IMG/VR virus record: IMGVR_UViG_3300048121_001678
Span: 124,001-188,000 of that record
Strand: one strand, 5' to 3'
Length of the DNA: 64,000 nt
Under the pieces are notes generated by a model. That model saw only the letters and a list, made by a program, of their open reading frames with translations, was not told the DNA's origin and searched no databases. The position numbers were made by a program, and so were the translations under genes. Positions 20,063 through 63,181 of the stretch are shown piece by piece; positions within the stretch are counted from its first letter, which is position 1, and every line of letters starts with the position of its first letter.

Positions 20063-20680
20063 TTATTCTGTTGGTCCGTTGAATGATTTACGAATGTCGG
20101 AATCAGAATAATTCTCAACCTCATCAGAAGTTAAAATATATTCATTCTTACCCGTTTTTTCCATATCGTCTTCTTTATCTGCAAAGAAATCGGTTAACTT
20201 TTGATTATAAGGATAACTATCTAAACTTCTTAGTTGTAGTTTCTCCTCAGGTGATTTTTGACGATACTTCTCGACTTTAGTTTCAATATCATTAATCTTA
20301 GTGAAAATTTGGTCCATCTGAGAAAGTTTACCTTCTAAATCAGATAACTTCTCGAACATTGTATCCATATACTCGTCTTGTTTATCTGATATCTTGTTCT
20401 GTGTATTCACTAAATCAGTTATATCTAACTCTTCAGTGTCCCCACCCATGTCTTTATCAGACTCAACATTTCCTTCGTCGTCAATTTTTTCAACTTCAGG
20501 GTCAGTATCAACATCAACTGGTTCCGCAATTTCTTCAGCACCACCTTCGACATCCATATCTAACTCTAAATCATCACCAGCCTCATCAGCGGTGTCTGTG
20601 GGTTCTTCTTGTTCAATAAGGTAACGATTAATAGTATTGTGTCTATTAAGTTCCTCAAGTATTTTTTTATCTATTGACAT
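20063..20680 (-). CDS. Acidic coiled-coil hypothetical protein (possible head-internal/scaffold protein)
   Basis: Very D/E-rich middle, heptad region, N-terminal KKILEE...YLIEQ leader. Confidence 0.6.
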   Translation of the reverse strand: MSIDKKILEELNRHNTINRYLIEQEEPTDTADEAGDDLELDMDVEGGAEEIAEPVDVDTDPEVEKIDDEGNVESDKDMGGDTEELDITDLVNTQNKISDKQDEYMDTMFEKLSDLEGKLSQMDQIFTKINDIETKVEKYRQKSPEEKLQLRSLDSYPYNQKLTDFFADKEDDMEKTGKNEYILTSDEVENYSDSDIRKSFNGPTE

Positions 20681-20691
20681 AATTTTTTATT

Positions 20692-20916
20692 TTAACCATT
20701 AAGTAATGTCTTAACACCATGAGGTGTTTCAACCTTTAAGGTTCTATTAACTTGTCTAGTATTATCAACTCGCTCAATAAGTCCGTCTCTCATACTAACT
20801 GTATAACAATCACCTGTATCTAAGTCACAAACCTCTTTGTAACCATTTCCGGCATCTCTTTCAGTAATTCTAGTGTCTTTTGACAAATACTGGTCTAATA
20901 ATGATTTAACATTCAT
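20692..20916 (-). CDS. Small hypothetical protein (74 aa, MNVKSLLDQYL..., CDLDTGDC)
   Basis: Start moved to ATG 20916 because TATTTATA lies at 20932-20939 and the longer track ORF overlaps the upstream gene. Confidence 0.65.
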   Translation of the reverse strand: MNVKSLLDQYLSKDTRITERDAGNGYKEVCDLDTGDCYTVSMRDGLIERVDNTRQVNRTLKVETPHGVKTLLNG

Positions 20917-20959
20917 AATATTACTTTTATATATAAATATACGTTTATTATCGTTTTTC

Positions 20960-23900
20960 TTACAATCCGTTATTTTTAGACCATCTAAAGGCCTGTTTAA
21001 ATATTGGGATTGAATTATCATACGTCTTTTTTATTAATTTTTCATCGTCAGTGGTAGGGTTATTTAATATATCATTAAGTTCATTATCGGTATTAATTCT
21101 TCTAAACCAATTTCTAATATATACCTTAGAATACGCAACAGCATAATTATCTTCACTAAAGTCAGAACCTATATAGTCTGTCAGTTGAGTACGTACTGAG
21201 TTACTATTATATCTAACCAATAATGGGTCAAAAGACCCGTTAGGGTCACTGAATGAAAAGTAACTTCTAGCCCTACCGTCAGATGTTGATGACACACAAA
21301 ATTGTCCACTAACTTTATCATTATCTAAACCTGACCACCGACCACTATCAGTAGTTAACCCAACGTAGTTATTATTAATTCCTTTAACATAACCATTTTT
21401 ATAACCTTGTTCTCTCCAAACAGTACCAATTGTTAATCTTTTAACATCAAAATTAGTAGTTTTAGTATTAACATACGTTATAATATCATTATAAGAATAC
21501 TGTGTGTTTTGTTTAGTTATAAAATCTAAACCTTGGTAAGCACTTACTGGCGAACAATTACTTGAACCCACACTTGAACCATTAGTTGAGTTAGTACTAA
21601 CACCATTAGAGTTTGAAGACCCATTCTGTAATGTTGGTGTGGTAGAAGGTGTTTCACTTGTTGGTTTTGCTTCTTTAGGTTTTTTATATGATTTATTAAT
21701 TCTCTTTAGTAAATCAATATTAACACTCATTGTTAGTTCGGTAATACTCGGGAATGAATATTTAGAAATTCTAACACCACTAAATGTAGTGATAAAATTA
21801 CCAGGACTAATACTGTGAGACACATCTGTAATCCAATACGGACCTGTGAACATTGGTACGTATCTTAGGTTAAAATACATTGTCGGCTGTATCATCATAT
21901 TACCCATTGACATAATCTGACAATTATAACTTCTATTTTTATAGATATTATATAATGAAGTTGATTGTTGAGATGTTTTCGAACCTTTACTCTGATTCGC
22001 CATGTCTGTTAATATACGGAACGATTCTGAGGTATCTTTAAATTGTGATTGGTCTAAACTTACGGATTTAAATATCCCTTGATTTCTCACACCAAAGTCA
22101 ACATTGAAACCAACCACTTTATTTGAGAAAGCATAATCTGTTTTATTTGTTTGATTTTCCCTAAGAACCTGTGCCTTGTACATATCAAAGCTATCATCAC
22201 CAAACCTATAATCTATATTTTCTGTTTGTTTTAAATGTTTCGACACTTTATCTGTGTATAAACATAAAAACCGAGGTCTACTTTTATTATCGTCAACCTC
22301 TAAGAACGTACCAAATACGTCGGACGCTGAGTTTTCAAAACCTTCTTCAGGTTTCGCGTTTTTAGATGGTTCATTAACACCATAAAAATTCGTATAGGAT
22401 GGTAATGCCATAAATAATAGGTTATTACCCTTAAATAAATGACCTATCAATGTGTAAATAGAATTAGAACCTGACTTATCATTAATAAATCCTGTTAGTG
22501 TACTAACATCCACAATAAGCTTATCACCAATATCTCTGTTCGCCCTATCTAAAAATAAAAATTCCTCAAATAATGTTCTATTTTGAAAGTCACCCCCTGC
22601 AATCCATTTATCATTTAATGTTTTAAAGAATTCATACAACTCTAACTTAGCCACCTCTCCCGACATAGACGTTTTAATCTGTTCAGTCTCTTCAGTAATT
22701 TTAGGTAAGTCTTTATTTAGTTTGGTAAATAAATTGTTTTGTACCTTCTTTTGTGAATTATCCATCAATGTCAAATATTGATTAAACAGCGACATAAACT
22801 TAGTACTTGTCATTGTTGGGTCTTGATATTTTTGAGTGGCGTAAATTTGTATGATTGGACCCAATTGTCTAACATTATTTTCACTAAATAGAATATCCAT
22901 TTCAACAAAGAAATCTGTAATTGTTGAACCACTATCACTATACTTCATTCTATCCTCATCATACACACCGACCACTAATCTTAGGGCGTTCCACGCATCG
23001 GGGTATTGTGATTCACTAATAGCTATTGTTGTTAAATTACTTGCAGTGGGTAGTGAGTCATTAATATAGTTACCAAAATTAATTTTTTGATTCTGAGTTT
23101 GATATTTTGTATCATCAGTGAATGAGTACCAAACACGTCTATTAAAATTAGAAGGATTACCCTGTTTAAAAATAAAAGTTTCTGATAATAAATTTTGAAC
23201 AGTATTTCTTAAACTAATCATTTGTTGATTGGCTATTATTTGTCCGTCTAAATCAGATTGACCTGTTAATGTTGGTCTATTAATAAAAAACAAACCATTT
23301 AAACTTGTCATTAAATTTGGTTTAAGAATATCTTCAGCGGGTATATTATCACGAACAGGGTCTTTACAGAACTCTAAAAATTCAGTCTCAAACATATCCA
23401 TAATACCCTCATTAAACACCGCCAGTATTTCATCAATTGATGAGTATTCAGATACCGACTCTAAACTAAATGCCGTTTGGTTGTTAGTTGTATTATCAAT
23501 TGTTTTTATATATTGTCTATATGTTGGTTTTTTAATTAAAGACGTATCAAAATACCCATAGTGTGAACCACCCCAAAGAGTTTTTATTGAACCATCATAT
23601 AACGATTGTCTTAACGGCTCCCCCTCATATATGCCAGGAATTTTACATATTTCAAACTCATACTGATTAAAATTACCACCACCCGCAGAAGGATAACATA
23701 GTAACTTTTCTGTATTATTAGTATTATCATAGGTTTTAGGTTTATCGTAAAAAGTGTAATATGAGGACACGCTATACGTAGTGTTTCCTGAAGACATATT
23801 AATAATGGAATCCGAATTACTCGCAATCTTTAAACCATTACCATCAAATTGTGTATTACCACTAAAATAATTATCAAAGTCTGACTGGGTCGTACCACTA

Positions 23901-27439: not shown

Positions 27440-27746
27440 AGTAATAGAAATGTGTGTCTAAAGCATTTTTATAATCCTGTAAAGATTGTACCAATGGAAA
27501 TGGAACAATCAAAACAGACCCATCAGGTATGTCTTTTTCTAAACTACCATATTGAGGATTAGCCATTTGTATTAACCAACCAAAATAAGGTGTTTGGTAA
27601 AATTCAAAACTAATTTTATCTAATCTACTCACATCTGCTTTATAAACATACCTCTTATCTGTAGTTTTTGAAGGCAAAACTATATTTGGGACCACAGTTT
27701 GTTGCCCATTTAATAAAAACTTTTGATATCTATCGTAGTATCTCAT
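27429..27746 (-). CDS. Baseplate wedge gp53-like / LysM-like (tail X) protein
   Basis: SRLDKISFEFYQTPYFGWLIQMANP...IPDGSVLIVP. Confidence 0.8.
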   Translation of the reverse strand: MRYYDRYQKFLLNGQQTVVPNIVLPSKTTDKRYVYKADVSRLDKISFEFYQTPYFGWLIQMANPQYGSLEKDIPDGSVLIVPFPLVQSLQDYKNALDTHFYYYGR

Positions 27747-32383: not shown

Positions 32384-32428
32384 CTATTTTAGTTTACTAT
32401 ATAAATAGACGAATTACTTATTTTATAA

Positions 32429-34231: not shown

Positions 34232-34259
34232 TTAAATTACTTTTATTATAAATACCTTA

Positions 34260-35175: not shown

Positions 35176-35187
35176 ATTTTGTAAATT

Positions 35188-35220
35188 AAAAAACCATAGA
35201 AAGTTTCCCTTCTATGGTTT
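35188..35220 (-). terminator. Intrinsic terminator with a GAAA loop, after the tail tube gene
   Basis: Minus strand AAACCATAGAAGG-GAAA-CTTTCTATGG-TTTTTT. Confidence 0.8.
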
Positions 35221-35221
35221 A

Positions 35222-35249: not shown

Positions 35250-35258
35250 TAGTATTTC

Positions 35259-35865: not shown

Positions 35866-36720
35866 TTATACTTCTATTTTATCTCCTCCTTTAGTTAAAT
35901 AAGTTTTAACTGGTTTTTCATCTTTATATTCTTTATCTAGAAAATCTTTAATAGAATCAATATTTCCTGGGTCATCATCAGAAAATCCAATCATTGGTAC
36001 AAAGTTATTTTTTACATCATTTTTGAAAAAAGCTCTTTGATTAAGTTTTGATGACATTTCTTTCACATATGAGATAAATCCTCTTAATGCCTTTATCTTA
36101 CCCTCCTCAGGATTCGCAGCACTACCTTCACCATATGTCACAGGGTGGAACTTCAACATATCTAAGTATTTTTCAATCATATCTTCACTAGTCATTTCTT
36201 CTTCACCAGCAAATTCACGAAATCTTTTAAGATTACCTATTAACTCTTCCTTACTTATACCCTTGTGGTTCGTCATAATCATATTATAGACCGCATCTCT
36301 TAATACTGAGGGTGTGTGTCCACGTGCGGTGATGATTGAGAATATAGACCCCCCATTTACCGCTTCAACAAAATCTTCCCATGATGGACCAACATCAGCA
36401 ACCATAGAATCAACTATAAATTGTGAATCACCCTTTACGGTAAAGTTTCTATACGGGTCTTCAGCATAACCAACAATTGTTTCACCATTATAGTTAAAAG
36501 GTTCTTTACCCAATATACCTCTATATTCTGCAAAATCTTCAGTAGACATACCAATTTCTTTACCTTCATCATTCAACACAATAATTTGTGTTGGCATATA
36601 AAGTATGTTGTCGTCCCAATCGAAAGCATAATACTTTAAATTAGGGTTACCGACATCATCAAAACCCTCTTTGAGTTCTTTTTCTTCGATGTACTCTTTT
36701 AATATTTTACGAAATATCAT
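35866..36720 (-). CDS. HAD-superfamily phosphatase-like protein
   Basis: Motif I YYAFDWDDNIL, motif II SIITARGH, Lys in EEGKIKAL, motif IV IGFSDDD. Confidence 0.75.
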   Translation of the reverse strand: MIFRKILKEYIEEKELKEGFDDVGNPNLKYYAFDWDDNILYMPTQIIVLNDEGKEIGMSTEDFAEYRGILGKEPFNYNGETIVGYAEDPYRNFTVKGDSQFIVDSMVADVGPSWEDFVEAVNGGSIFSIITARGHTPSVLRDAVYNMIMTNHKGISKEELIGNLKRFREFAGEEEMTSEDMIEKYLDMLKFHPVTYGEGSAANPEEGKIKALRGFISYVKEMSSKLNQRAFFKNDVKNNFVPMIGFSDDDPGNIDSIKDFLDKEYKDEKPVKTYLTKGGDKIEV

Positions 36721-36860
36721 TTCTTGTTGTTTAATTTTTCGATTAGTCTTTCAAGTTGTTCTTCAGATATAATTACATTTTGTGGTTTTTCTGAAAAAGT
36801 CTTAACCCCATTATCTTTCACATTGAGGTGTTCTGTTAACATGTGCTTTTTAAATTCCAT
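36717..36860 (-). CDS. 47-aa protein MEFKKHMLTEHLNVKDNGVKTFSEKPQNVIISEEQLERLIEKLNNKK
   Basis: Not in the track. Fills the gap, has an A-rich leader and an ATGA overlap with the HAD gene, and follows the TATTTATA at 36925-36932. Confidence 0.75.
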   Translation of the reverse strand: MEFKKHMLTEHLNVKDNGVKTFSEKPQNVIISEEQLERLIEKLNNKK

Positions 36861-36894
36861 TTCTTTAATTTATTTAAACGTTTAATTAAGGCTA

Positions 36895-36919
36895 ATGGGG
36901 ACCACTATGTAGTCCCCAT
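36895..36919 (-). other. GC-rich RNA hairpin (ATGGGGACTAC-ATA-GTGGTCCCCAT)
   Basis: 11-bp stem with one G-U pair and no U-tract; 5 nt downstream of the late-type motif. Confidence 0.6.
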
Positions 36920-36939
36920 ATTAATATAAATATACCGAA

Positions 36940-43765: not shown

Positions 43766-43809
43766 TAATTTTTCCCATATGGTGTTATTTATAAATAAAA
43801 CACAGACTT

Positions 43810-45348
43810 ATGGAGTTTAAAAAGAGCCAGGAAAAAATCCGTGAAATAGAAAACAAAATTACGGAATCAGAAAGAAAAGATATCGTTACCGAGAATAAAA
43901 AAGGTAGTAAAATGATAACGGCAATAAAGTTACCATATTCATATTCGTCGTTAAAACGATTCATAGATAAAGAAACAATGAATGTTCATTATAACCAACA
44001 CTATAAAGGTTATATTAGAAAACTTAACAAAGCGTTAGAAAATGTTAAAGATAAAGACCTTGATTTAGAGTCTTTAATAAAGGGTGTTTCAAGATATAGT
44101 AATACCATCAAAAATAATGCTGGTGGGGCATATAATCATGAGTTATTTTGGCAGATGTTATCACCAAAACAACAACAACCAAATGGTCCAGTATTAGATA
44201 AAATTAAGAAGAAGTTTAAAACATTTTCAAATTTTAAGAAAACATTTAAAAACAAAGCTTTAGGTCAATTTGGTTCAGGATGGGTATGGTTAGTACTCAC
44301 AAAAAGTGGTGACGTTAAAATTGTAACTACATCTAATCAAGATAATCCGTTAATGAACACTATTAAATTTGGTGGAATACCATTATTAGGTTTAGATTTA
44401 TGGGAACACGCATATTACTTAAAATACAAAAATAAAAGAAACGAATATATTGATAATTTCTTTACAGTTATTAATTGGTCTTTTGTTAATAGACAATTTG
44501 ATTCACATCAAAAGGGTAAACTTAACGAATCAAAAGTTGTAAAGAGCTTAATTAGTGAGGGTTTATCTAAAGGATGTTCACCACAACAGGTAAACACATA
44601 TAGAATGGTCTTTAACAGAAATCCGCAAGTTAAGAAAAAGTTTATGTACGCAATTATGGATATACTTAAAGAAGTTTATTCTGAATTTCATTACGAAAAA
44701 AATCAATACGCAGATGGACAAATGTCAGGAATATACGATTTTGAACAACCTGGTCGTTCAGTAATTAATAAATTAAACACTAACTACTCCGCATTTTGTA
44801 TTTTAGTTAATGACCTTAATGCAGTATTAAAACACTACGGGCAGAATCCATTAAATTTTGTAGGTGTTAATGATAAACAACAGTTGAGGGAGGTACAAAG
44901 AATGATAAAACTTATGGTTGAATTCAGATATCGTATTTTTAATCAAGAATCAGGAACATTCCAAAGCATTATGGCGTCATTAGACAAAACAAATAAATTT
45001 GGTGATGAAAGGGAAATAAAGGCAGTTGTTAATATGAAAGATATCTTTAACACTAAAAAAGTATTCAAAGTAGGTGAACTAGGTGGGAAAGATGATATGA
45101 TTGGAGGTATTGATGCGACAGTAGAAATAAATGGCGAAACTAAAACAATACAAATAAAACCATTTAATAATACTGAAGAAAGTGAAGGTAGAGTCACTGT
45201 ATTTGGTACAGGTAATGTTAAACCCTATAAAACCGACTATATGTGTTTTCATGATAACTCTAAAGGTACGTTAGTTTTTGAAAATAATGATACAAAAATT
45301 GTTAACGGTAGATACACTTTCCCTATCGATAGTTTAATAAAACAATAA
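43810..45348 (+). CDS. Fe/Mn superoxide dismutase (Mn-type signature) fused to a C-terminal PD-(D/E)xK nuclease-like domain
   Basis: LPYSYSSL, HYNQH, NNAGGAYNHELFW, FGSGWVWL, NQDNP, DLWEHAYY (all four metal ligands); C-terminal GDERE...GIDA...IQIKP. Confidence 0.85.
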   Translation: MEFKKSQEKIREIENKITESERKDIVTENKKGSKMITAIKLPYSYSSLKRFIDKETMNVHYNQHYKGYIRKLNKALENVKDKDLDLESLIKGVSRYSNTIKNNAGGAYNHELFWQMLSPKQQQPNGPVLDKIKKKFKTFSNFKKTFKNKALGQFGSGWVWLVLTKSGDVKIVTTSNQDNPLMNTIKFGGIPLLGLDLWEHAYYLKYKNKRNEYIDNFFTVINWSFVNRQFDSHQKGKLNESKVVKSLISEGLSKGCSPQQVNTYRMVFNRNPQVKKKFMYAIMDILKEVYSEFHYEKNQYADGQMSGIYDFEQPGRSVINKLNTNYSAFCILVNDLNAVLKHYGQNPLNFVGVNDKQQLREVQRMIKLMVEFRYRIFNQESGTFQSIMASLDKTNKFGDEREIKAVVNMKDIFNTKKVFKVGELGGKDDMIGGIDATVEINGETKTIQIKPFNNTEESEGRVTVFGTGNVKPYKTDYMCFHDNSKGTLVFENNDTKIVNGRYTFPIDSLIKQ

Positions 45349-45387
45349 TAAACGGGTAAAGCCAGATATTTATAATAAAAGTTAACG

Positions 45388-49672: not shown

Positions 49673-49742
49673 AATATTTGTTTTTCGTTTGAGACATTTT
49701 ACTCACACCACAATGGCATGATTTCCCTTAACATTCAAACAA

Positions 49743-49771
49743 ATAATAGTGTATTAATAAATCTAAGTCAA
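49743..49771 (-). promoter_or_regulatory. Sigma70-like promoter TTGACT-N17-TATTAT for the DNA polymerase
   Basis: Same -35 hexamer as the ssb promoters; 70 nt upstream of the ATG. Confidence 0.65.
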
Positions 49772-49807
49772 ACTATTTGTTTTGATTCTTTTCTTGTATC
49801 CCCATAA

Positions 49808-50161
49808 TTAAATAATATTGATATATAAATTTTCTCTGATTGGGGTAATGAGTTCACCCATTGAATTAATTATCGAGAATTCACCCAAAAAACGACCTTT
49901 TCTTTTAGTGTCCCTCAATAACCACTTATAATATATGTAGTATGTGATTGGGGCGTTAGGGTTGTCTTGTGTTTTTTCAGTTATAAACGCATTGTTCATA
50001 ATAATCTTTGGAATGCCAGTCGACTCTTCTTTCATTGAAAAACGGATTGTTGCGTTGTCTAAATCAGCGTCGAACAATTTCCAAGAATCTGTTCGACCAT
50101 CTCTTACAACTTCCATCTTTAAGATTGGTAACTCACTGTTTTGTTTTATAAAGAATTCCAT
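49808..50161 (-). CDS. Small BppU-N-like adaptor domain protein
   Basis: MEFFIKQNSELPILKM...ATIRFSM...YKW...DT...G.F.GEF; paralogous to the N-terminus of 53640..58664. Confidence 0.6.
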   Translation of the reverse strand: MEFFIKQNSELPILKMEVVRDGRTDSWKLFDADLDNATIRFSMKEESTGIPKIIMNNAFITEKTQDNPNAPITYYIYYKWLLRDTKRKGRFLGEFSIINSMGELITPIRENLYINII

Positions 50162-50180
50162 AATTATAAATATATCAATA

Positions 50181-50208
50181 AAGAAAAACCCCTCCGAAGA
50201 GGGGTTTT
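50181..50208 (-). terminator. Intrinsic terminator with a cUUCGg loop
   Basis: Minus strand AAAACCCCTC-TTCG-GAGGGG-TTTTTCTTT. Confidence 0.9.
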
Positions 50209-50231
50209 ATATTTTATAGGTTTTTAATTTA

Positions 50232-53200: not shown

Positions 53201-53585
53201 TTGAAGTGGATTGTGGAGTACTTGTTGGTGTTCTTGTTGGAGAAACCGTTTGAGTAATCGTTGCCGTCATCGTAGGTGTTACCGTAGATGTTATCGTTGC
53301 AGTGATAGATGGTGTTACCGATGGTGTATTTGACGGGGTAATTGTTGGGGTAACTGTCTGTGTTTGTGTTGGGGTTGGTGTTGGATGACCAATTACATAA
53401 GTGTAAGATGCTTCGTATGTTTCAGAATAGATTGTGTAGGTACCGTAAAAATAATCAGTAACTAAATCAGCCGGCATAGTAACAACACCAAAGTCCGTTA
53501 CAGTCGAACCTGTATCCGCAGTAAAAGTAATGTGAACACTTTCACCTACTAAATTATCACTCAAAAATCTAATTCCATCTGCCAT
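50232..53585 (-). CDS. Mucin-like Thr/Pro/Ser-rich surface or fibre protein with Cys-rich and C-terminal beta domains
   Basis: About 700 aa of TPT/TVTP/TSTP repeats, a Cys-rich globular region, a second TP linker and a beta-rich tip; two TATTTATA copies upstream. Confidence 0.75.
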
Positions 53586-53639
53586 TGTGTATAAATACTT
53601 TAATATATTATTTTATAAATAGTTTATCTTATGAGAATA

Positions 53640-56600
53640 TTATGGGTAAGGTGTGGTAGTATTAAAGTTGTTTAATATTTGTGACGATGTTAACGCGGTA
53701 TTGTATAATCTAATAATACCGTACTCACCCCTAAAGTCACCAGTATTATCCGCACCTGGATTCTGTTGACCAAAGAAGATGTTATTATCAACACCACTTG
53801 ATAAGTATGATACCCCCGCTTCTGAGTCATTTAACACACCATTGATGTATAAACTTTGTGTACCACTTGAGAAATCCCAAACCAATACCACCTGATACCA
53901 CTGACCTTGATTAAATGGTGATGTTGAGTAAAGATAGTTATTCTGCCAAATCTTACCTCTAAATCTACCATCTTCAGCAGCTATTGGTGGCATGTTCCAT
54001 CCCGTTTGTGGGTTTGATTCCGACATTGACATAATGTTACCATTAGTATCATCGGGATTAATCCACAATTCATAAGTGAATGATTGAGTGGCGTTACCTG
54101 TACCCGCAACATTACTTAATAATATGTAATCGTCAATACCATCTGTGACTATAGACTTATCTGTGGAGTTATATGTTGGTCCATTAACTAAAGTACCATT
54201 ATAGTTACCTTGTAAATCCGTCCATAGAGTTCCGGTACCCAGATATGAATTTGAATTTCTGGCGTCTAAATAGACTAATAAATTAGATACTATTGGAGAT
54301 GTCCCTGATGGTGTTACTGTTTGTGTTGGCGTTATTGATGGAGTAACAGAAGATGTTACAGATGGTGTTGGAGTAGATGTCACCTGTGGTGTTTGTGTAG
54401 GTGTTGGTGTAGGCGTAATACAATCATCCGCAAAATAACCTGAAACCCCACCGTGGTTATCTTGGAAAATGTTTCTTAGTGTTACAAAACTTGGTTTAGT
54501 TAAAACTGGTGCGAAATAAGAATTAAATAAGTTATAACCTAAAATATTATTTGTTTGAATACCCGATGGAGTTCTCATATTATCATTCCACTCAGGAGAT
54601 AAAGAACCTCCCGCCCAAAACTCAGACATCTCCCACATACTCCAGTTAAGTAAATACATATACTCTTTATATGCTAATTGAGCCTGTTCTGTATCACCTG
54701 ACCAATTAGGTGCGTATTCACTAGGGTCAAACATACTATTGTCAATAGCTTGTTTCATAGCCAAATGTAAGTCAGTTGTTTGCCAATTCGGATTTTGTTC
54801 CGCCATCCAGTTTACTGCGGTTGACGAACCAGGAACCGCACCCATTATACCAAACAAGTGAACCGTATGGAAAATATGTTCAAATACTTCTCCAATCACA
54901 GTATCTCCACTTGTGGAGCCACTACTGTACCACACCATGTCATTAGTTGCGTGAGTATCTAAGAATTCTTGGTATCCTGTATACCCTGTTATACCTTCAT
55001 CGGTCAACCAATTAGGGTCATAGTCGTCCCCACTACCATAACCAACTCTTTGGGCTGTAGGTATTCCCTCATGTATTGTGCCTACATCACCTCTTAAAGT
55101 GGCTACTAAATTATTTTGATATGACAAAGTAATCCCTGTTGCTGATGGGTCCATTATTAATTGGAATGAACGGGCAACTTTTTTAGAGAATTCATCAGGT
55201 ACAGCAACATTACCACCAACCGCACCGGCTATAACTTCTAACATACCACTAACATTTATACTTCTATCGAATACTGCCCCATTACTGGTATCGGCAGTTA
55301 AAGGTCCTGCGACATAACAACTAAGAAGAGATGCTGCGGATGGGGTCGGTGTTGGAGTTACAGATGCTGTTGGTGTATATGTCGGAGTTGTTGTTGGTGT
55401 AGGTGTATTAGATGCAGTAACTGTAGGTGTTGGTGTTACGTATGGTAAAGGTGATAATGAATATCTCTGTCTGTATTGGTCATAGAATGATGTGATATCT
55501 GAATCAGATATTGCACTATCATATAATGCAACAATACCCATATCTCCATCAAAGAAGTCATCAGCAGCCCAGTTACTATCACCAATGTAATTATTATTTC
55601 TTGTAATTACGTTTGGTAACACACTTGTTAAACCAGATACCGAAGTCGTTTGATTAAACATCGTGTATGTTGAACCGTCAAGACGACCCACATAGAATCC
55701 CCAACCATTGTTTGTTATACCATTAGTAATTGTTTGTGTGAATGCTTGAGTGGCCCCTTGTCTAATCTCAAACCATAGATTATTAGTAGAGCCATTCCTA
55801 CCAAATATGATATTATCACTCTCATCTCCATTACCAAAGTCTATTATTCTCTCCCAATTAGATACCCCATTGAAATTAACAAAGGCTAATATTGTAATAC
55901 CATTACTAAAGTTGTCAAAGCCTGAAGGTACTTCACCATATTGAGATGTTCCGTCAAATGTTACAATACCACCATTAGATGATGACACTGTTGGAGAATT
56001 ATATAATGTGGCATCGTTTCCACCACCACTTGTATCTGTCCATGTTGATGATGTTGCATTCGCACCATCAAGTAATAATATTGGTGAACCTACAACCGAT
56101 GTAGGTGATGGTGTTGGTGTCAATGTAGGAGTTGGAGTGGCTGAATTAGCAAATGGTGTTGCGGTGAAGTCCATTGTCGGTGCTGGTGTATCAGTTGGAG
56201 TAACTGATTGAGTGACCGTAGGTGTTACCGTTGACTCAGGAGTGACTGAAGGAGTTACAGATTGTGTCAATGTTGGAGTTACCGTCGATGTCTTAGTGAC
56301 CGTAGGTGTGTTTGTCGGTGTATTAGATGGTGTTAATGTTTGAGTAACAGAAGCGGTTACTGTTTGTGTTGGGGTGTTTGTATTTGTTACAGTCGGAGTA
56401 ACAGTAGAGGTAACTGACGGAGTTACTGTATTTGTTGGAGTACTCGTTGGTGTTACACCCGGTGTTTCAGATGCGGTTACTGTTTGTGTTGGGGTGTTTG
56501 TATTGGTGACAGTTGGTGTTACTGTTGATGTCACTGACGGAGTTACTGTATTTGTTGGTGTGTTAGAAGGGGTTAATGTTTGAGTAACCGAAGGACTTAC

Positions 56601-58664
56601 TGTCTGTGTTGGCGTATTTGTTGGAGTAACCGTAGGTGTACTTGTTGAAGATGATGTTGGTGTTATGGTGTTTGTTGGTGTGATACTTGCAGTCACCGTT
56701 GGTGTAACCGTACTCGTAGGTGTCGATGTAGGACTTGATGGTGGAGTTACCGAAACTGAAATACTTGGGGTATTTGTTGGTGTGTGTGTTGGAGTAACTG
56801 TAGAAGTGACAGTCGGTGTTACTGACGAAGTAACCGATGGTGTTAATGTTGCAGTCGCAGATGGTGAAACCGTTTGAGTCGGAGTGTTTGTGTTCGTTAC
56901 TGTTGGTGTTACCGTTGAAGTAACCGAAGGTGTTACTGATTGTGTTGGTGTATTTGTTGGTGTCAATGAAGGCGTAACAGATGCCGTTACCGTTTGAGTC
57001 GGAGTATTAGTTGCCGTCACTGTTGGTGTAACAGATGAGGTAACCGAAGGAGTAACCGTCTGAGTTGGGGTGTTTGTCGGTGTTAATGTTGGGGTAATTG
57101 ATGCCGTAACTGTTTGAGTAGGTGTATTTGTGTTCGTCACTGTTGGTGTTACTGACGAAGTGACTGATGGCGTTAAACTTGGACTCACTGAAACCGAAGG
57201 TGTGATACTTACAGAAACCGTGGGTGTTGGAGTATTAGTTGCGGTTTTAGATATCGTAATTGTGGGGTTAGGTGTGTTAGTGGTAGAAGGTGTAACTGTC
57301 GGTAACGGAGTCGTCGATACAGAAGGTGTTAACGTATTTGTTGGCGTGGGCGTCGAAGACCCGATAGGTGTTGCGGTAACATCTGAAGTTGGTATAGGTG
57401 TAGATGTCATAGTAGGTGTTGCAGTACCAATAGGTGTTGCGGTAATATCAAAAGTGGGTATCGGAGTATCCGTAGGGTTTGGTGTATTTGTTGGTGTTGG
57501 GGTAACATCTATAGTTGGAGTAACTGTCGGTGTTGATGTATGACTAATACTTGGTGTGTTTGTTGGAGTTAATGTATTACTAACAATAGGTGTGTCAGTA
57601 GGGTTTGGTGTATTTGTTGCCGTTGGGGTAACATCTATAGTCGATGTAGGTGTAACAGTTGGGCTTTTACTAATAGTTGGTGTGTTTGTTGGAGTTAATG
57701 TATTACTAACAATAGGTGTGTCAGTAGGGTTTGGTGTATTTGTTGCCGTTGGGGTAACATCTATAGTTGGAGTAACTGTCGGTGTTGATGTATGACTAAT
57801 ACTTGGTGTCTGAGTAAGACTAACAGAAATGGAAGGTGTTACACCAATTGTTTTTGTAACTGTTGGTGTTGATGTGATTTGTAAAGTGGATGTGGGTGTG
57901 ATTGATGTTGTCGGAGTTACCGTTGGTGTTGGTGAAGGTGTAGATGTTGGTGTCGGAGTAATCGTAGTATCAAAGTTAGACTTTGGCTCAACCACAAACC
58001 TATATTTACCTGAAGAACTTATATTGTCAACTTTAATATCTTCATAGTAACTTTCACCAGTAATTAAATTATAATTGTATGGGCTTATAATTTTATATGT
58101 GGCATTTTTCTCACCCTTATTTATGGTTAATTTAACTTCATTAACTATTTGACGACCATCAACCATTAAAAGTACATTTTTAAAGGTGATATTCACTTCA
58201 GTATCCACAGGGTATGTTGCGTTGGCTGCGTAGTCAGAAATTACAGAGCCACTACTGTGTGTGTCAGTAAGTGATATTTGATTTGATATCTTATTTCTAC
58301 GACAACACATTTCAGAGTCGGCAAATGATTCCGCAACCGTAATAAATAAACTACTCTCTATCGGTACTCGGTATACTCCCCTTTCATTAGTTATTGTGAA
58401 AAAACCATTGTAACTACCGTTTTTATTAGTATTCTTTTTAGAGAATTGATAAGACAAGATGTAACCTGAATCATCTTTATTTGGTAATACTTGTGCTTTT
58501 GAATTTGCAATCTTATAAATACCTGTTTCGACATCCTGCATTGAAAAGGTAACAGTGGATGCATAGATAAGTGGGTCAAGTTGGTTGTAACCATTTCTTG
58601 ATTCATTTAGAACCTCAACTTGTAGTTTAGGTAACGTACTATTCTTTTTTATAAAAAACTCCAC
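53640..58664 (-). CDS. Mucin-like fibre protein: BppU-like anchor, Thr/Pro stalk, LamG domain, zincin-like domain, second LamG domain
   Basis: LLLDGAN...WTDTSGGGNDATL...FDGTSQY...WERIIDFGNG and LLVYLDARN...WTDL...TYELWINP...WYQVVLVWD...LYING are LamG/ConA-like; EVFEHIFHTVH...KEYMY lies between them. Confidence 0.75.
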   Translation of the reverse strand: MEFFIKKNSTLPKLQVEVLNESRNGYNQLDPLIYASTVTFSMQDVETGIYKIANSKAQVLPNKDDSGYILSYQFSKKNTNKNGSYNGFFTITNERGVYRVPIESSLFITVAESFADSEMCCRRNKISNQISLTDTHSSGSVISDYAANATYPVDTEVNITFKNVLLMVDGRQIVNEVKLTINKGEKNATYKIISPYNYNLITGESYYEDIKVDNISSSGKYRFVVEPKSNFDTTITPTPTSTPSPTPTVTPTTSITPTSTLQITSTPTVTKTIGVTPSISVSLTQTPSISHTSTPTVTPTIDVTPTATNTPNPTDTPIVSNTLTPTNTPTISKSPTVTPTSTIDVTPTATNTPNPTDTPIVSNTLTPTNTPSISHTSTPTVTPTIDVTPTPTNTPNPTDTPIPTFDITATPIGTATPTMTSTPIPTSDVTATPIGSSTPTPTNTLTPSVSTTPLPTVTPSTTNTPNPTITISKTATNTPTPTVSVSITPSVSVSPSLTPSVTSSVTPTVTNTNTPTQTVTASITPTLTPTNTPTQTVTPSVTSSVTPTVTATNTPTQTVTASVTPSLTPTNTPTQSVTPSVTSTVTPTVTNTNTPTQTVSPSATATLTPSVTSSVTPTVTSTVTPTHTPTNTPSISVSVTPPSSPTSTPTSTVTPTVTASITPTNTITPTSSSTSTPTVTPTNTPTQTVSPSVTQTLTPSNTPTNTVTPSVTSTVTPTVTNTNTPTQTVTASETPGVTPTSTPTNTVTPSVTSTVTPTVTNTNTPTQTVTASVTQTLTPSNTPTNTPTVTKTSTVTPTLTQSVTPSVTPESTVTPTVTQSVTPTDTPAPTMDFTATPFANSATPTPTLTPTPSPTSVVGSPILLLDGANATSSTWTDTSGGGNDATLYNSPTVSSSNGGIVTFDGTSQYGEVPSGFDNFSNGITILAFVNFNGVSNWERIIDFGNGDESDNIIFGRNGSTNNLWFEIRQGATQAFTQTITNGITNNGWGFYVGRLDGSTYTMFNQTTSVSGLTSVLPNVITRNNNYIGDSNWAADDFFDGDMGIVALYDSAISDSDITSFYDQYRQRYSLSPLPYVTPTPTVTASNTPTPTTTPTYTPTASVTPTPTPSAASLLSCYVAGPLTADTSNGAVFDRSINVSGMLEVIAGAVGGNVAVPDEFSKKVARSFQLIMDPSATGITLSYQNNLVATLRGDVGTIHEGIPTAQRVGYGSGDDYDPNWLTDEGITGYTGYQEFLDTHATNDMVWYSSGSTSGDTVIGEVFEHIFHTVHLFGIMGAVPGSSTAVNWMAEQNPNWQTTDLHLAMKQAIDNSMFDPSEYAPNWSGDTEQAQLAYKEYMYLLNWSMWEMSEFWAGGSLSPEWNDNMRTPSGIQTNNILGYNLFNSYFAPVLTKPSFVTLRNIFQDNHGGVSGYFADDCITPTPTPTQTPQVTSTPTPSVTSSVTPSITPTQTVTPSGTSPIVSNLLVYLDARNSNSYLGTGTLWTDLQGNYNGTLVNGPTYNSTDKSIVTDGIDDYILLSNVAGTGNATQSFTYELWINPDDTNGNIMSMSESNPQTGWNMPPIAAEDGRFRGKIWQNNYLYSTSPFNQGQWYQVVLVWDFSSGTQSLYINGVLNDSEAGVSYLSSGVDNNIFFGQQNPGADNTGDFRGEYGIIRLYNTALTSSQILNNFNTTTPYP
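57472..57809. repeat. Near-exact 126-bp tandem repeat (about 2.7 copies, 42 aa unit)
   Basis: About 90 nt starting ttggtgtgtttgttggagttaatg are identical at 57551 and 57677; the block at about 57472 recurs 252 nt later. Confidence 0.85.
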
Positions 58665-58683
58665 AGACTATAAATACATTTAA

Positions 58684-60717
58684 TTAATCATTAACTTCAA
58701 TACCAACATCACAGTTAGGATTGGAAACACTGAATCCTACACCACAATCAGTATCTACAACATCAAAACCAAATGCACAACCTTCATCGACAACATCAAA
58801 ACCAAAATTACATGACACATCATTCATAATGAAATCAAAATCACAAGCATTCAAATCAATGTTAAAATCGAAGAAACACTCCGATAATATTTCTAAACAA
58901 TTAGGACACCAAAAATCAAATAAATTATATGTGTCTCTTTCAACTCTAAAATTATGTTGTACCTGTGGTGAATTTAATGGTTCTGTGTAAAATCTCATTT
59001 TAGAAATCCCACCCATAAAAGTCCCACCAAAATTAGGTTCCATCTCAATATTAGTGACAAGTATTGGCTCATATGTTGTACCTGAAATCATTTCATTTGG
59101 CATACATTCAGGGTCTTGTATATATGGTCCGTTTATGTTAGTACAAGATGTTGGTATTAAACTCTCTCTTAAACCTTGTGTACCACCACCCCATGAAATC
59201 GTATATGGTACACCTATTTGTTTTTCTTTCTCAGTGTTTAATTCATGTGGTATAATTTCTTCAAAATCTTCAATAACCATAAACAAATATCCGTTTACGT
59301 ATAATTTTAAAGAACCACGCCTATCACTTACCTCATCCAACCATTTTTGAGTCCATTTAATGTTACCAACTTTTTCATCGTTAGCACCACTTGGACCTAT
59401 TAGTTTAACAGTGTCACCTGCAGTAGATGCCGTATATGTTTCGGTACGGATATCCCCTAATCCACCGACATTTAATAAATCACAATTTTCTAAGTACCTA
59501 TATCTTTCAAAAACGGCAGATAACATAACCCACCTTTCTTTAGTTTTTTCAGACTCGTTAATCGGGTATCCACAAACATCGTATATACCTGATGTCGAAC
59601 ATATCTCATTAATACAATACCCTGATGAGTATGTTGTCCCTGTATTTTCACATGTTCCTGTTGTAATACAACTACCAGTATATTTTATATATTTGACACA
59701 TAATTTAGGATTTTTTGGGTCACCACTTAATCGTAGTGAAACGGCATTTGATAATAAATCAAGTACGGGGTCAGACTCCTTATTAGGGTATATGGTGATA
59801 TTACCACAAGTTTTAAAACAACTAACTAATCCGGCGGTAACCCTTTTATAGTCTTCGACAGATGCACTACTAATCACTTCATTTGAACCACAGATAAACA
59901 AACCATTGTAAATTACAGGTATACCTGTGGCTTTATGGTAAAATTTATTTTCAGAGCGTGTACCAAGAAAAAAGAATGTACCAGAATTACCTGAATAAAC
60001 ATCATTAAGATATTCTTGACTATCACTTAATTCATATTCATCGTACTGTCGGGGTTTGATAAGTGTTTCCATTGACCATCCTTTGTTTACTCTCTCAGGA
60101 AAAATTTCATAGTCATAACCATGTAATTTATAAAATCCTTGAAAGAATCCACCATATAATTCTTGGTAGTAACCTACAGAACTATCTATTTTGTTAACAA
60201 TATTATAAACAGTTTCTTTTGTTTTACCCGTAAATCTTTGGTTTGGGTTTTTGGCAAATGTATTTACAGGGTGTAATTTCATTCTCCTATCGTGATATAG
60301 TGGGTCGTGAGTTTTACTTGGAAAAACACCCATAGAATAATATAATGTATTACCCGATATCTTATCAAACATACCTACATCAATCATTGTAAGACCTACA
60401 TCACAAATACCAGTGAATCCTGTATAACAAGATAAATCGACATTATTAGGGTTATAATAATTTAAAGATGTAAAAGTGTTCGCTGTATTTGCAACATTCC
60501 AGTAAAGGTTTGGTTTCGTAGTTGTACCCGATTGAGTTAAATCAAAATTAATTGGTAAACGATTACCATCATCATATGCAATGACTTTATCTGAAAAAAC
60601 AACTTCGCTGTCGTAGTCGCTCTCATCAGATGCCAAAGTAATATCAAAATACTCACTGGTATCCAACTTAACCTTAAATCTTTTGGAGTTATAACTATTA
60701 ATACTCTGACCTGCCAT
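58684..60717 (-). CDS. Cys-rich LamG-like structural protein with C-terminal 11-aa Cys repeats
   Basis: GWSMETLIKP, LKLYVNG, GGISKMRFYTEPL...VQHNF are dispersed LamG-like strands; C-terminal C-x-[FV]-x-[FI]-x-[VIM] repeats. Confidence 0.6.
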   Translation of the reverse strand: MAGQSINSYNSKRFKVKLDTSEYFDITLASDESDYDSEVVFSDKVIAYDDGNRLPINFDLTQSGTTTKPNLYWNVANTANTFTSLNYYNPNNVDLSCYTGFTGICDVGLTMIDVGMFDKISGNTLYYSMGVFPSKTHDPLYHDRRMKLHPVNTFAKNPNQRFTGKTKETVYNIVNKIDSSVGYYQELYGGFFQGFYKLHGYDYEIFPERVNKGWSMETLIKPRQYDEYELSDSQEYLNDVYSGNSGTFFFLGTRSENKFYHKATGIPVIYNGLFICGSNEVISSASVEDYKRVTAGLVSCFKTCGNITIYPNKESDPVLDLLSNAVSLRLSGDPKNPKLCVKYIKYTGSCITTGTCENTGTTYSSGYCINEICSTSGIYDVCGYPINESEKTKERWVMLSAVFERYRYLENCDLLNVGGLGDIRTETYTASTAGDTVKLIGPSGANDEKVGNIKWTQKWLDEVSDRRGSLKLYVNGYLFMVIEDFEEIIPHELNTEKEKQIGVPYTISWGGGTQGLRESLIPTSCTNINGPYIQDPECMPNEMISGTTYEPILVTNIEMEPNFGGTFMGGISKMRFYTEPLNSPQVQHNFRVERDTYNLFDFWCPNCLEILSECFFDFNIDLNACDFDFIMNDVSCNFGFDVVDEGCAFGFDVVDTDCGVGFSVSNPNCDVGIEVND

Positions 60718-60729
60718 TCCCTTTTTTAA

Positions 60730-60757
60730 GATAAATACTTTCTTTGTTGTATTTATA
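60730..60757. promoter_or_regulatory. Back-to-back divergent late-type motifs (TATTTATC minus, TATTTATA plus)
   Basis: One copy faces each of the divergent genes starting at 60717(-) and 60765(+). Confidence 0.7.
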
Positions 60758-60764
60758 GTTAAAA

Positions 60765-61469
60765 ATGAGTATGATAAAGCCCGATATCTTTAGAAAAGAA
60801 AAAGCTGCAGAAAAAAAGGCACTAGAAATAGGATGTAAAGGAACTCACAAACATGACAACGGTTTTATGCCTTGTGGGTCACACAAAGAGTTTGAGGAGG
60901 TGACTTCAAAAACAGAAGGTGAAATTGATGAATTAGTTGATTTTGATGGTACTATGAATAACTCAAAAATACCAATTATTGACCCACACGTATCACCAAA
61001 GAAAACTACTGACCAAACAGTCGCAGCTGCACGTACAAAACAAGACCCATATGCATTAGGGTTCAGAAGATATATAGGTGAGGAAGATATGTCCTCAGCA
61101 TTTGGATGGGAGGAGACAGAAGATATGAGTTTTGATGATACCATAGAGTATCTTGAAGACGAATTAGGGGTTGACAACGCAGAAGAAAGAGCTGAAGAAA
61201 TGGGTAAGGACCCAAAACTTGAAAAGAGAAAAGTAGATGGGGCATTTACGAGGATGAGACTTCAAGAAAAAGAAAAAATGTTCACTAAAGAACAAATAAT
61301 TAAAATGAAAGAAGATTTGTTAGTTGATAAAGGTAGTGATAACGATATCAGTATTTCTGATGATTCAATTTCAAAAATAATTATGAGAAATATTAAATCA
61401 CTTAAGAAATTGGCAGATAAAGAGGGTATAAGTGTAAAACAGTTATCAAGGTTAATGAGTAATGAATAG
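60765..61469 (+). CDS. Acidic hypothetical protein with an N-terminal Cys/His metal-binding motif
   Basis: ALEIGCKGTHKHDNGFMPCGSH. Confidence 0.65.
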   Translation: MSMIKPDIFRKEKAAEKKALEIGCKGTHKHDNGFMPCGSHKEFEEVTSKTEGEIDELVDFDGTMNNSKIPIIDPHVSPKKTTDQTVAAARTKQDPYALGFRRYIGEEDMSSAFGWEETEDMSFDDTIEYLEDELGVDNAEERAEEMGKDPKLEKRKVDGAFTRMRLQEKEKMFTKEQIIKMKEDLLVDKGSDNDISISDDSISKIIMRNIKSLKKLADKEGISVKQLSRLMSNE

Positions 61470-61917
61470 TAATTTATACGATAGAAAAGCAAAGTTACCT
61501 AAATCACTAATTAAGTATTTAGAAGAGTGCGGTGGTATGGTTGAGGCTGACTCAAACACAGAGGGGTTTAATAGAAATAAGGAACTCAGGGAATCGGGTG
61601 TGGTTAGTTATCAACAAATCAAAAGAATTAAGAATTTCTTTGATTCTTTTGATGGTAAGAAAGAAGACGCACCATTCGTATTAAACGGAGGTGATAGAAT
61701 GCAAAAATGGTGTGACCACGTATTAAACCATTGGAGGTCAGTAGAACAAGGTGGTAAAAAAAGAAAAGCCGATGGGGGAATGGAAAACCAATTCATAGAT
61801 AACCATGAAAAAAATGGTATAGTTATGAATCCACATGATAAACATGAAAAAGGTATTAATAAGTTTGATACAACCGTAAGAGAAAGTATCATTAAAAGAT
61901 TTAAAAGATTAACATAA
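61462..61917 (+). CDS. Hypothetical protein (possible head-morphogenesis domain)
   Basis: RNKEL...VSYQQIKRIKNFF...LNGG...KW; overlaps the upstream stop. Confidence 0.6.
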   Translation: MNSNLYDRKAKLPKSLIKYLEECGGMVEADSNTEGFNRNKELRESGVVSYQQIKRIKNFFDSFDGKKEDAPFVLNGGDRMQKWCDHVLNHWRSVEQGGKKRKADGGMENQFIDNHEKNGIVMNPHDKHEKGINKFDTTVRESIIKRFKRLT

Positions 61918-61918
61918 A

Positions 61919-62215
61919 ATGGCAGAACAAAACGACAGATTAGATTTCTCACAACCAAAAAACACTTTGAGTGAAATCGCAGAAAGAGAAAGAGCAAGAC
62001 TTTTTCCACGTAATGACTATTCACCTGTTTCAGACAAGTATTCAGCAGAGCACCCTGACGCACTTGCGGATGGTGATGATGAAGGTAGAGGTACCGGAGT
62101 ATTCTTAGACATCCATAACTTAGGTGGTGGAACAAGTACTGATATCAACGAAAGAAACGATGATATAAAAATTAATAAGTATAACTACAAAAACGGTTAT
62201 AAAGTAGAAGAATAA
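61919..62215 (+). CDS. Hypothetical protein
   Basis: Coupled ORF; YSAEHPDALADGDDEGRGTG. Confidence 0.65.
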   Translation: MAEQNDRLDFSQPKNTLSEIAERERARLFPRNDYSPVSDKYSAEHPDALADGDDEGRGTGVFLDIHNLGGGTSTDINERNDDIKINKYNYKNGYKVEE

Positions 62216-62610
62216 TGAATTTACAAGATACTCTAAGGTCAGTTCTTTTAGAAGTTGCATCAATGGACGATGTTCAAAATGCAATTAGAAAAAAACAGGT
62301 TGTCACTATTTTTTACGATGGTGATGAACCAGGTGGTCGTGGTTTAAGAACCATAGAACCCGTTTGTTTAGGGACCTCAAAATCGGGAAATAGAGTATTA
62401 AGAGCGTGGGACATGGAAGGTGCTTCCCACACTGCCAAAATAGGTGAACAACCCTTACCAGGATGGAGACTTTTTAGACTAGATAAGGTTATGACAATTA
62501 AACCTACAAATGATTACTTTACATCTCCTAGACCTGGCTATAACTTTAATGGTGATAAGAGTATGACTAACGTCATCATTAACGCACAATTTAATAATAA
62601 CGATGAATAA
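62215..62610 (+). CDS. Stand-alone WYL-domain protein
   Basis: AIRKKQVVTIFYDG...RTIEPVCLG...LRAW...WRLFRLDKV. Confidence 0.85.
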   Translation: MNLQDTLRSVLLEVASMDDVQNAIRKKQVVTIFYDGDEPGGRGLRTIEPVCLGTSKSGNRVLRAWDMEGASHTAKIGEQPLPGWRLFRLDKVMTIKPTNDYFTSPRPGYNFNGDKSMTNVIINAQFNNNDE

Positions 62611-63181
62611 CGACTTAATGCAAAAATTGGCAATGTCTAAAAAAATTATGGACGCCTCTGACAATATTAAACCAGGACAATCAGGTGCCGGATTACCTAT
62701 GACTGAAAATGTAAATGCGACATATAACATACCGCCAAATATGATTCAACAATCATCACCACAACAAATGTCTCAACCACAACCAGTGACTGAAGATAGA
62801 ATTCAAAACTCTAAATTACCTGATGAAATCAAACAATTAATGATGGAACACCCAATCCAACAACCAGGTTTTGGTGCAGGTGGACCAGTACTTTCTAATG
62901 ATATTATTGAAGGTGCTCAGAGATTAATGGGTAATAACCAAAAAAGTTCAGTTAACGAAACAAAAACAACAAATAGTGTTGCTACACCAAACTACGATTC
63001 GGACCTCAAACAAATGATTAGGGATGTTGTACGTGACACAGTAAGAGATGTTGTTAGAGAAGAACTACAAAACTCAGGAATGTTAACTGAGAGTGGTGTG
63101 AAAACAAATGAATCATTACAACTTAAAGTGGGTAAACACGTTTTTGAGGGAAAAGTTACTAAAATTAAAAAAGTAAAATAG
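62603..63181 (+). CDS. Hypothetical Q/P-rich protein
   Basis: Coupled ORF; NSKLPDEIKQLMMEHPI and IRDVVRDTVRDVVREEL...LTES. Confidence 0.65.
   Translation: MNNDLMQKLAMSKKIMDASDNIKPGQSGAGLPMTENVNATYNIPPNMIQQSSPQQMSQPQPVTEDRIQNSKLPDEIKQLMMEHPIQQPGFGAGGPVLSNDIIEGAQRLMGNNQKSSVNETKTTNSVATPNYDSDLKQMIRDVVRDTVRDVVREELQNSGMLTESGVKTNESLQLKVGKHVFEGKVTKIKKVK

Follow-up and report, generated by a model that had tools for sequence, protein, structure and literature searches.

In bacteriophage T4, the prohead protease gp21 cuts after L/I-x-E, and the capsid-targeting sequence (CTS) is an N-terminal 10-mer whose processing is blocked by an Asp at P1 (PMC9026906; PMC3012670) and determined by positions 8 and 10 (PMC9026906). 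The CTS heads otherwise unrelated proteins (IPI-III and Alt), ends in L/I-x-E with Glu at P1 and is removed by gp21. The present study deals with a 22-residue N-terminal peptide, in the following referred to as the tag, which shares this format and recurs in the 297,164-bp IMG/VR virus record IMGVR_UViG_3300048121_001678, and with its relation to the proteins of one 64,000-nt window of that record (bases 124001-188000). The record (99% complete according to CheckV, GC content ~33%) is an uncultured 297-kb T4-like jumbo phage, and the window comprises its tail, replication and late-gene part. We tentatively read the tag as a prohead-core (capsid) targeting propeptide to which, within the window, only a small protein of 47 residues belongs; on the sequence evidence presented here, this reading comes close to an even chance. 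Injected or head-internal phage proteins are among the first to reach the host and include anti-restriction factors, e.g. T4 IPI. Since no strongly conserved targeting leader that could serve as a search pattern is known to us, injected proteins are hard to spot from sequence.

A comparable arrangement exists in the giant phages phiKZ, 201phi2-1 and SPN3US, in which the propeptides of many head-internal proteins of the inner body and ejection type are cut by the gp175/gp245 protease C-terminal to the Glu of a three-residue motif, with redundant sites (PMC9026906). However, the motif in these phages is S/A-x-E, no common propeptide sequence is known, and the present phage is T4-like. The encapsulation peptides of bacterial microcompartments (BMC; PduP, PduD, EutC) are terminal amphipathic helices of ~18 residues followed by a hydrophilic linker, which are attached to unrelated enzymes and show a hydrophobic spacing identical to that of the tag (key residues L6, L9, I10, I13 and L14 in PduP; PMC4594438). 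They differ in that the shell is a BMC, no proteolytic removal takes place and the sequence is not conserved between enzymes; their placement can be N- or C-terminal, the latter corresponding to the helix of the 47-residue protein. The cargo-loading peptides of encapsulins likewise are short terminal peptides that load diverse enzymes into an HK97-fold shell, but unlike the tag they are C-terminal, remain uncleaved, bind the shell directly and have another sequence.

The tag in the phage genome

The tag has the sequence MKK[IV][IV][KR]LTESDLxR[IL]V[KR]RVIxE. It was first noticed in many small open reading frames (ORFs) starting with ...I[KR]LTES[DEQ]L..[IL][IV]..., for which a strict pattern and then a hidden Markov model (HMM) were used. 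Nine copies scored 24-31 bits, the next best sequence stayed below 8 bits, and an independent tool retrieved the same nine (Table 1). Furthermore, when all N-termini were compared with each other without bias, the tag family scored higher than shuffled controls. The protein bodies behind the tag are unrelated and comprise a poly-Lys, Cys-rich 83-mer, an acidic EF-hand protein, two proteins of 355 and 386 aa without known family, and an ORF located between portal and protease, i.e. at the gp67/68 position. Searches of the tagged proteins and their neighbours against Pfam and PHROGs gave only an EF-hand, a cell-wall hydrolase/PG_binding match and two PHROG families of unclear meaning, and Pfam contains no model for the tag itself. 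Synonymous sites in the tag DNA vary freely, so that it is the protein that is conserved.

The tag forms an amphipathic helix with a hydrophobic moment of 1.64 compared to 0.81 for shuffled sequences, which places it in the top 3% of the shuffles. Its hydrophobic residues follow a coiled-coil-like spacing of i, i+3, i+4, i+7 and i+8, and a hydrophilic stretch begins after column 18. In the 83-aa protein (genome 206549-206800), the tag is followed by ~14 consecutive Lys and then by a C-terminal motif that contains Cys (phrog_27331). In many relatives its orthologues are located within a few kb of the capsid gene, and it resembles the basic internal proteins of T4.

The tag is linked to a late-type promoter motif. 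An analysis of 8-mers enriched in upstream regions yielded TATTTATA; its reverse complement, TATAAATA, is the consensus of T4 late promoters. In the whole genome, TATTTAT(A) was found 12-32 nt before 55 of 344 ORFs (16%), including portal, protease, hub, tape measure and fibres, and the sheath and tube genes showed TATTTATA 40-44 nt upstream. Compared to the 16% of all ORFs, 8 of 10 tag genes showed TATTTAT at -20 to -27, and a ninth is the operon partner behind such a gene. Further TATTTATA sites in the window lie at 45367, 53597 and other positions, and TAnnTTTG-like 8-mers (TATATTTG) are likewise enriched upstream of genes.

Another N-terminal motif, [ED]IxRI[KH]E[IV]MG[LI], was observed on unrelated late proteins (genome 243264-243557, 240812-241981, 283114-283713 and 289620-290264) and at the C-terminal end of 62021-63040. 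By eye it is similar to the C-terminus of the scaffold (PQF[LM]RMKDLMGKL), but a scaffold-derived model retrieved none of these proteins, so that the likeness is unsupported.

Protease and possible cleavage sites

The head genes lie outside the window and form a module with the gene order of T4, namely large terminase, portal, two small ORFs, a 132-aa ORF, a Peptidase_S77 protease, a very acidic scaffold and a gp23-like capsid protein. T4 and this phage have in common a gp21-family S77 protease, the order of portal, gp67/68-like gene, protease, acidic scaffold and gp23-like capsid gene, and one small basic protein among the presumed cargo. The presence of a gp21-like protease, which a preliminary description of the window had presumed, was confirmed with a score above the family cut-off (Table 1). 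The protein is ~40% identical to cyanophage gp21, and its ELNHP and GVSSRG motifs, which presumably hold the catalytic His and Ser, align with T4 gp21. Concerning candidate substrates, the sequence INE/AANAS of the capsid protein (slashes mark known or presumed cuts) aligns exactly with the T4 gp23 cut site LTE/AEIGG, and the scaffold, which has a net charge of -89, has kept NLIE/S before a conserved C-terminal 20-mer.

In a set of 167 distinct tags, L or I occupied column 3 and E occupied column 5 in 100% each; column 16 was [LIVM] in 99%, and column 18 was E in 96% and never D. Accordingly, the two most invariant residues of the tag are both Glu in an [LI]-x-E context. In addition, 28 of 56 internal tags showed an extra [LIVM]xE with its Glu 4-8 residues upstream, compared to 12% in control segments (p = 8e-12).

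If the tag directs proteins to the prohead core, its hydrophobic face (L8, I11, V12, V15, I16) would attach to the scaffold core, which is highly acidic, during assembly. Once the shell has formed, cuts by the S77 protease would be expected at L-T-E/S and at [VI]-I-x-E/Q, plus at the upstream sites in polyproteins, where a cut would create a new N-terminus such as NKKVVRLTESDL. The tag would thereby be broken up and its cargo released into the head interior, as happens with the T4 internal proteins (PMC3012670, PMC9026906). In this manner we infer core binding, cleavage and virion presence of the tagged proteins. An electrostatic attraction between tag and scaffold would add little, since the tag core carries a charge of only +0.7 (about +2 to +3 with the MKK start).

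Spread of the tag

Among 1.84 billion representative proteins, a profile built from 23 N-terminal tags retrieved 7,231 at E <= 0.001 and 44 at E <= 1e-10. The best 150 matches are all metagenomic; residue 4-8 is where the first tag begins in 146 of these, and 2-3 copies in a tag-domain-tag-domain structure are present in 52. These repeated tag-domain proteins look like polyproteins. Such repeated units were seen in the metagenomic proteins P0004, P0006, P0017 and P0152, one of which, with 77 aa, contains two tags and another, with 751 aa, three tags as well as WYL_2. Both GNAT and WYL_2 domains occur behind the tag in metagenomic proteins, and other contigs showed arrays of promoter-plus-tag genes, one of them with a peptidoglycan-binding domain (PG_binding_1). 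On related contigs a Met is located 1-5 residues upstream of the tag, and the genomes of partial relatives contain several copies.

A literature search for LTESDL-type strings gave unrelated matches only, and cultured phages yielded no match in tblastn, either with a 26-aa tag or with the tagged acidic protein. A word-indexed homology search with residues 1-40 of one tagged protein returned three close orthologues only, because the index needs shared 5-mers. A related capsid protein was found on >599 IMG/VR contigs, the best 80 of which showed 72-84% identity, while the nearest cultured phages are distant, namely Flavobacterium phage immuto (41% capsid identity), Microcystis phage Mel-JY01 and Rhodothermus phage RM378. 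A megablast search with 11 kb of the window against cultured phages gave no match.

The tag appears to represent a variant of the T4 principle of capsid targeting that is very widespread and has not been described before. With clear reservations, we consider it possible that uncultured marine T4-like jumbo phages of an abundant clade share a single, nearly universal 22-residue label, bordered and divided by prohead-protease sites, in order to load a very large, fast-changing repertoire into the capsid for injection; this repertoire would span thousands of clusters and include tag-domain polyproteins as well as GNAT, peptidoglycan-binding and WYL_2 proteins. If so, the label would be a marker of injected phage effectors that can be read from sequence. 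As a capsid-targeting propeptide, the tag would permit a direct bioinformatic census of candidate injected proteins in widespread marine jumbo phages, for which at least 7,231 clusters match, and it would provide a compact, portable encapsidation signal for engineering.

The 47-residue protein of the window

The sole tag-family element in the window is the C-terminal amphipathic helix of a 47-residue protein (NVIISEEQLERLIEKLNNKK), which lacks the closing [VI][IL]xE of the tag. In a six-frame scan with the 9-copy genome model, this helix scored 15.5 bits (E 0.003), and a comparison of the whole protein family with the tag profile (hhalign) gave a probability of 93.8% (E 1.7e-7). The ORF is present and syntenic in 21 of 21 aligned related contigs and in most others examined. 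Its invariant columns are M1, K5, E10, K25, Q27, E33, Q35 and E37, and [LIVM]-x-E occurs at both E10 and E33 in 22 of 22 orthologues, the E10 site being [LI]-x-E. The leader of this protein, 10 residues ending with [LI]-x-E, has the format of the T4 CTS (PMC9026906). From its sequence features, the protein could most simply be regarded as a small core protein or as the precursor of an internal peptide.

The stop codon of the 47-aa ORF overlaps the ATG of the gene for a HAD-like protein. A fusion by frameshift was considered; the ORF is kept as a separate frame, with its stop at or within a few codons of the HAD-like start and the distance varying. A complex prediction for the two families, which addressed the idea of an adaptor, gave no answer, neither for nor against. 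Upstream, a GC-rich hairpin (36895-36925, minus strand; GGGGACTAC...GTGGTCCCC) is located between the TATTTATA that follows the sheath gene and the 47-aa ORF, so that a promoter-like motif precedes a terminator-like stem.

The named proteins and their leaders

The preliminary description had proposed that seven window proteins, among them the HAD-like protein, a fusion of superoxide dismutase (SOD) with a nuclease and a WYL-like protein, carry short charged leaders rich in hydrophobic-x-E. Every peptide quoted there was found at its position, and the units of the named proteins are indeed headed by the late-type motif (Table 1). The pattern as such does not distinguish these proteins. In the genome, [LIV]xE occurs at 0.0160 per position compared to 0.0139 expected, 46% of all ORFs have at least one within the first 30 aa, and 16 ORFs have at least three, including the SNF2 helicase (42011-43765) with three. 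The density per 100 aa amounted to 2.10 in the seven named proteins and to 2.06 in eight replication proteins of the window, a parity that the preliminary description itself had regarded as speaking against its proposal. The pattern on the HAD-like protein, the SOD-nuclease fusion, the WYL-like protein and the remaining proteins reflects how charged amphipathic N-termini are ordinarily composed in an AT-rich genome. In general, a three-residue motif such as [LIV]-x-E cannot pick out cargo in an AT-rich proteome rich in Lys, Glu and Ile.

For the HAD-like protein, the motifs given in Table 1 are invariant in 22 aligned orthologues. The AlphaFold2 model shows a pLDDT of 77 overall and <50 for residues 1-14, with a helix at residues 2-15 and the first strand at residue 30. 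The N-terminal helix is followed by an invariant L16-x-E18-G19, and [LIVM]-x-E18 was found in 22 of 22 orthologues. No sequence match was obtained in Pfam or PDB; the fold matches to HAD phosphatases (Ceg4, MDP-1, Lem4) are weak, with Z of 6-6.8 on a level with G6PD Rossmann domains. Compared to the tag profile (hhalign), the family gave a probability of 0.5%.

The leader of the SOD fusion is a true extension, because the SOD domain begins at residue 37 and cellular SODs lack the leader: residues 37-232 align to residues 4-203 of solved cellular SODs (PDB match 3e-55). The expectation that cellular homologues are devoid of the leader is thereby borne out for the solved cellular SODs. Within the leader, [LIVM]xE is kept in orthologues at E12 in 8 of 10 and at E28 in 10 of 10 despite variable flanks, while the comparison with the tag profile (hhalign) gave a probability of 0.9%. 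The C-terminal domain (44503-45348) may be restriction-endonuclease-like of the PD-(D/E)xK type, which is to be taken as a lead only; a feature-space search placed it near RE_TaqI, RE_MjaI and Mrr-like clusters at 0.90-0.91. The SOD-nuclease fusion is kept in 20 related contigs.

The WYL-like protein contains a single LLE within its N-terminal 16 residues, shows nothing that would count as a proper leader and gave no match in the tag profile scans. The acidic late protein (20063-20680) showed a weak PHROG match to 'virion structural protein' (E 0.0025) and no tag in the profile scan.

Since [LIVM]-x-E is kept at fixed leader positions in all orthologues (E28 in SOD, E18 in the HAD-like protein, E10/E33 in the small ORF), protein-specific propeptides are possible for these three proteins.

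Alternative explanations

The proposal that each named enzyme has its own L/I/V-x-E capsid leader, is loaded into the head and, after trimming by the gp21-like protease, is injected as part of a kit against stress or defence can draw on the late-motif units, the presence of the protease, the SOD leader absent from cellular SODs and the orthologue-kept sites (SOD E12 and E28, HAD E18 with an invariant G19, small-ORF E10), as well as on the WYL_2 and GNAT domains found behind true tags in metagenomic proteins. Against this stands, apart from a motif density equal to that of replication proteins and just as high in the SNF2 helicase, that the leaders resemble neither each other nor the real tag. 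In the all-against-all comparison of N-terminal 30-mers, the best partner of the HAD leader scored 37 and that of the SOD leader 36, both within the shuffled range, and a genome scan with the tag HMM, which detected the nine copies, gave <=3 bits for the HAD, SOD and WYL leaders. What remains of the suggested modular tag is that unrelated late proteins do carry an N-terminal tag ending in [LIV]-x-E, but the named enzymes have neither this tag nor any common leader. Coincidences of this length (5 residues) number five in the genome, one of them being the MEFKK start shared by the 47-aa ORF and the SOD fusion, which is thus at chance level, and the segments of the proteins starting at 61462 and 62603 that had been taken for leaders, TVRESII and VVREE...MLTES, are both C-terminal. 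Late expression does not single out head cargo either, as it extends to tail and neck genes. In T4, the leaders found on unrelated head proteins (IPs, Alt, gp68) reportedly have little sequence in common, so the missing common leader is not decisive. Altogether, we consider such an enzyme kit unlikely.

A targeting propeptide would also have to be reconciled with several observations that weigh against it. Compared to the T4 CTS, the tag comprises 22 residues instead of 10 and is strongly conserved, being near-identical over thousands of clusters; it further differs by its two sites, by internal and tandem copies between domains and by the lack of sequence likeness to the T4 leaders, and targeting and cleavage are what we infer for it. 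To our knowledge, there is no comparably conserved CTS consensus. The tag is absent from the closest cultured relatives (immuto, Mel-JY01, RM378) and also from a 484-kb uncultured phage, and the top metagenomic matches were chosen for their likeness to the profile, which inflates the apparent conservation. For the 47-aa ORF, the 15.5 bits of the single-sequence match are weak, and a second tag model gave 11.1 bits (E 0.16). Helix packing alone could explain the invariant Glu and hydrophobic residues. Moreover, a Clp-type AAA+ ATPase encoded near two tagged genes is another possible reader of the tag. This ClpA/B-like ATPase (phrog_4871, E 4e-244) is followed by a peptidase (genome 226131-229291) and adjoins two of the tagged genes (231438 and 233306), Clp systems are known to have N-terminal degrons, and an amphipathic helix with coiled-coil-like spacing would suit a handle for an AAA+ unfoldase/peptidase of the Clp type, an oligomerisation helix or an address to tail or baseplate. 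None of these would account for the two invariant [LI]-x-E Glu, for a column 18 that is never Asp, for the additional site that precedes internal copies or for the tagged gene inside the head module, and a reader other than the prohead core is in our view rather improbable. A tag without any targeting role, as the first helix of a fast-evolving multigene family or as a recombining 5' cassette kept for expression or folding, looks more doubtful still: many tagged genes are small, of unknown function and arranged in tandem behind identical promoter motifs, which is typical of paralogous expansion, but the bodies show no detectable similarity (EF-hand, GNAT, PG_binding_1, poly-Lys), the tag DNA is not conserved at synonymous sites, and the tag recurs within proteins between domains. 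Finally, an encapsulation peptide of the BMC type for a non-capsid shell of host or phage would have the same format, a terminal amphipathic helix of 15-20 aa with a hydrophilic linker and the hydrophobic spacing of PduP. Yet the BMC shell gene PF00936 is absent from the 99%-complete phage genome, while control genomes gave matches, and the features of the cleavage sites would stay unexplained. We know of no common BMC loci in Flavobacteriia, and this origin of the tag is very improbable indeed.

Features of the window and the genome

The coordinates of the features discussed are summarized in Table 1.

Table 1. Positions of the proteins, leaders, motifs and tag copies (window numbering unless marked as genome)
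Feature	Position	Strand	Description
47-aa ORF, small late protein	36717..36860	-	10-residue N-terminus ending in invariant [LI]-x-E10, linker, tag-like C-terminal amphipathic helix
Tag-like helix of the 47-aa ORF	36720..36779	-	sole tag-family element in the window
Tag copies	genome 290279, 286254, 206549, 214191, 231438, 233306, 12726, 69018 and 62021 (internal copy)		all outside the window
Peptidase_S77 prohead protease	genome 213433-214152		PF03420, 86.5 bits, over cut-off; phrog_207, 9e-44
HAD-like protein	35866..36720	-	motifs FDWDDN, IITARG, K208, GFSDDD; between sheath and tube genes; peptide MIFRKILKEYIEEKELKEG
SOD fusion	43810-45348	+	leader, SOD domain, C-terminal domain; peptides MEFKKSQEKIREIENKITESERKDIVTEN
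Leader of the SOD fusion, 36 residues	43810..43917	+	MEFKKSQ.RI.EIE conserved, variable stretch, [IVL]-x-E28 just before the SOD domain
SOD domain and ~280-residue C-terminal domain	43918..45348	+	Fe/Mn superoxide dismutase; Pfam Sod_Fe_N 2e-20, Sod_Fe_C 6.5e-39
WYL-like small protein	62215..62610	+	Pfam WYL, E 7e-4, 19.9 bits, under the 21.8-bit cut-off
Acidic late protein, 205 aa	20063..20680	-	net charge -0.19/residue; three [LIV]xE in the first 30 aa
151-aa protein	61462..61917	+	TVRESII at the C-terminal end; no family, no tag
192-aa protein	62603..63181	+	VVREE...MLTES in the C-terminal third; tag score 5.9 bits (noise)
Late-type motif TATTTATA	43786..43793	+	24 nt before the ATG of the SOD fusion
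Late-type motif TATTTATA	36925..36932	-	after the sheath gene; followed by a GC-rich hairpin, then 47-aa ORF and HAD-like gene
Late-type motif TATTTATA	60750..60757	+	heads unit 60765-63181: DUF3721 protein, 61462, 61919, WYL-like, 62603
Late-type motif TATTTATA	20932..20939	-	heads unit ending with the acidic protein 20063-20680

The window encodes a long tail sheath, a tail tube, a baseplate hub and very large tail/fibre proteins, and also ribonucleotide reductase, a DnaB-like helicase, a 5'-3' exonuclease, a gp32-like protein, a family-B polymerase and the SNF2 helicase. The host is probably a member of the Bacteroidota. The small subunit of ribonucleotide reductase (13792-15054, minus strand) contains an N-terminal ATP-cone (Pfam 1e-19), while the large subunit (12066-13772) contains none. 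An ATP-cone on the small subunit is known from NrdB of Flavobacteriia, which would fit a Bacteroidota host.

In the region of the fibre genes (48000-60000), the GC content is 0.38-0.41 compared to 0.32-0.35 in the remainder of the window, and the GC skew is of opposite sign. Within this region, a 117-aa ORF (49808-50161, minus strand) and a 1674-aa fibre-like protein (53640-58664, minus strand) have a common N-terminus of ~30 residues, M/VEFFIKxNSxLPxLxxEV. They form the highest-scoring N-terminal pair of the genome (score 67), and both are headed by TATTTATA.

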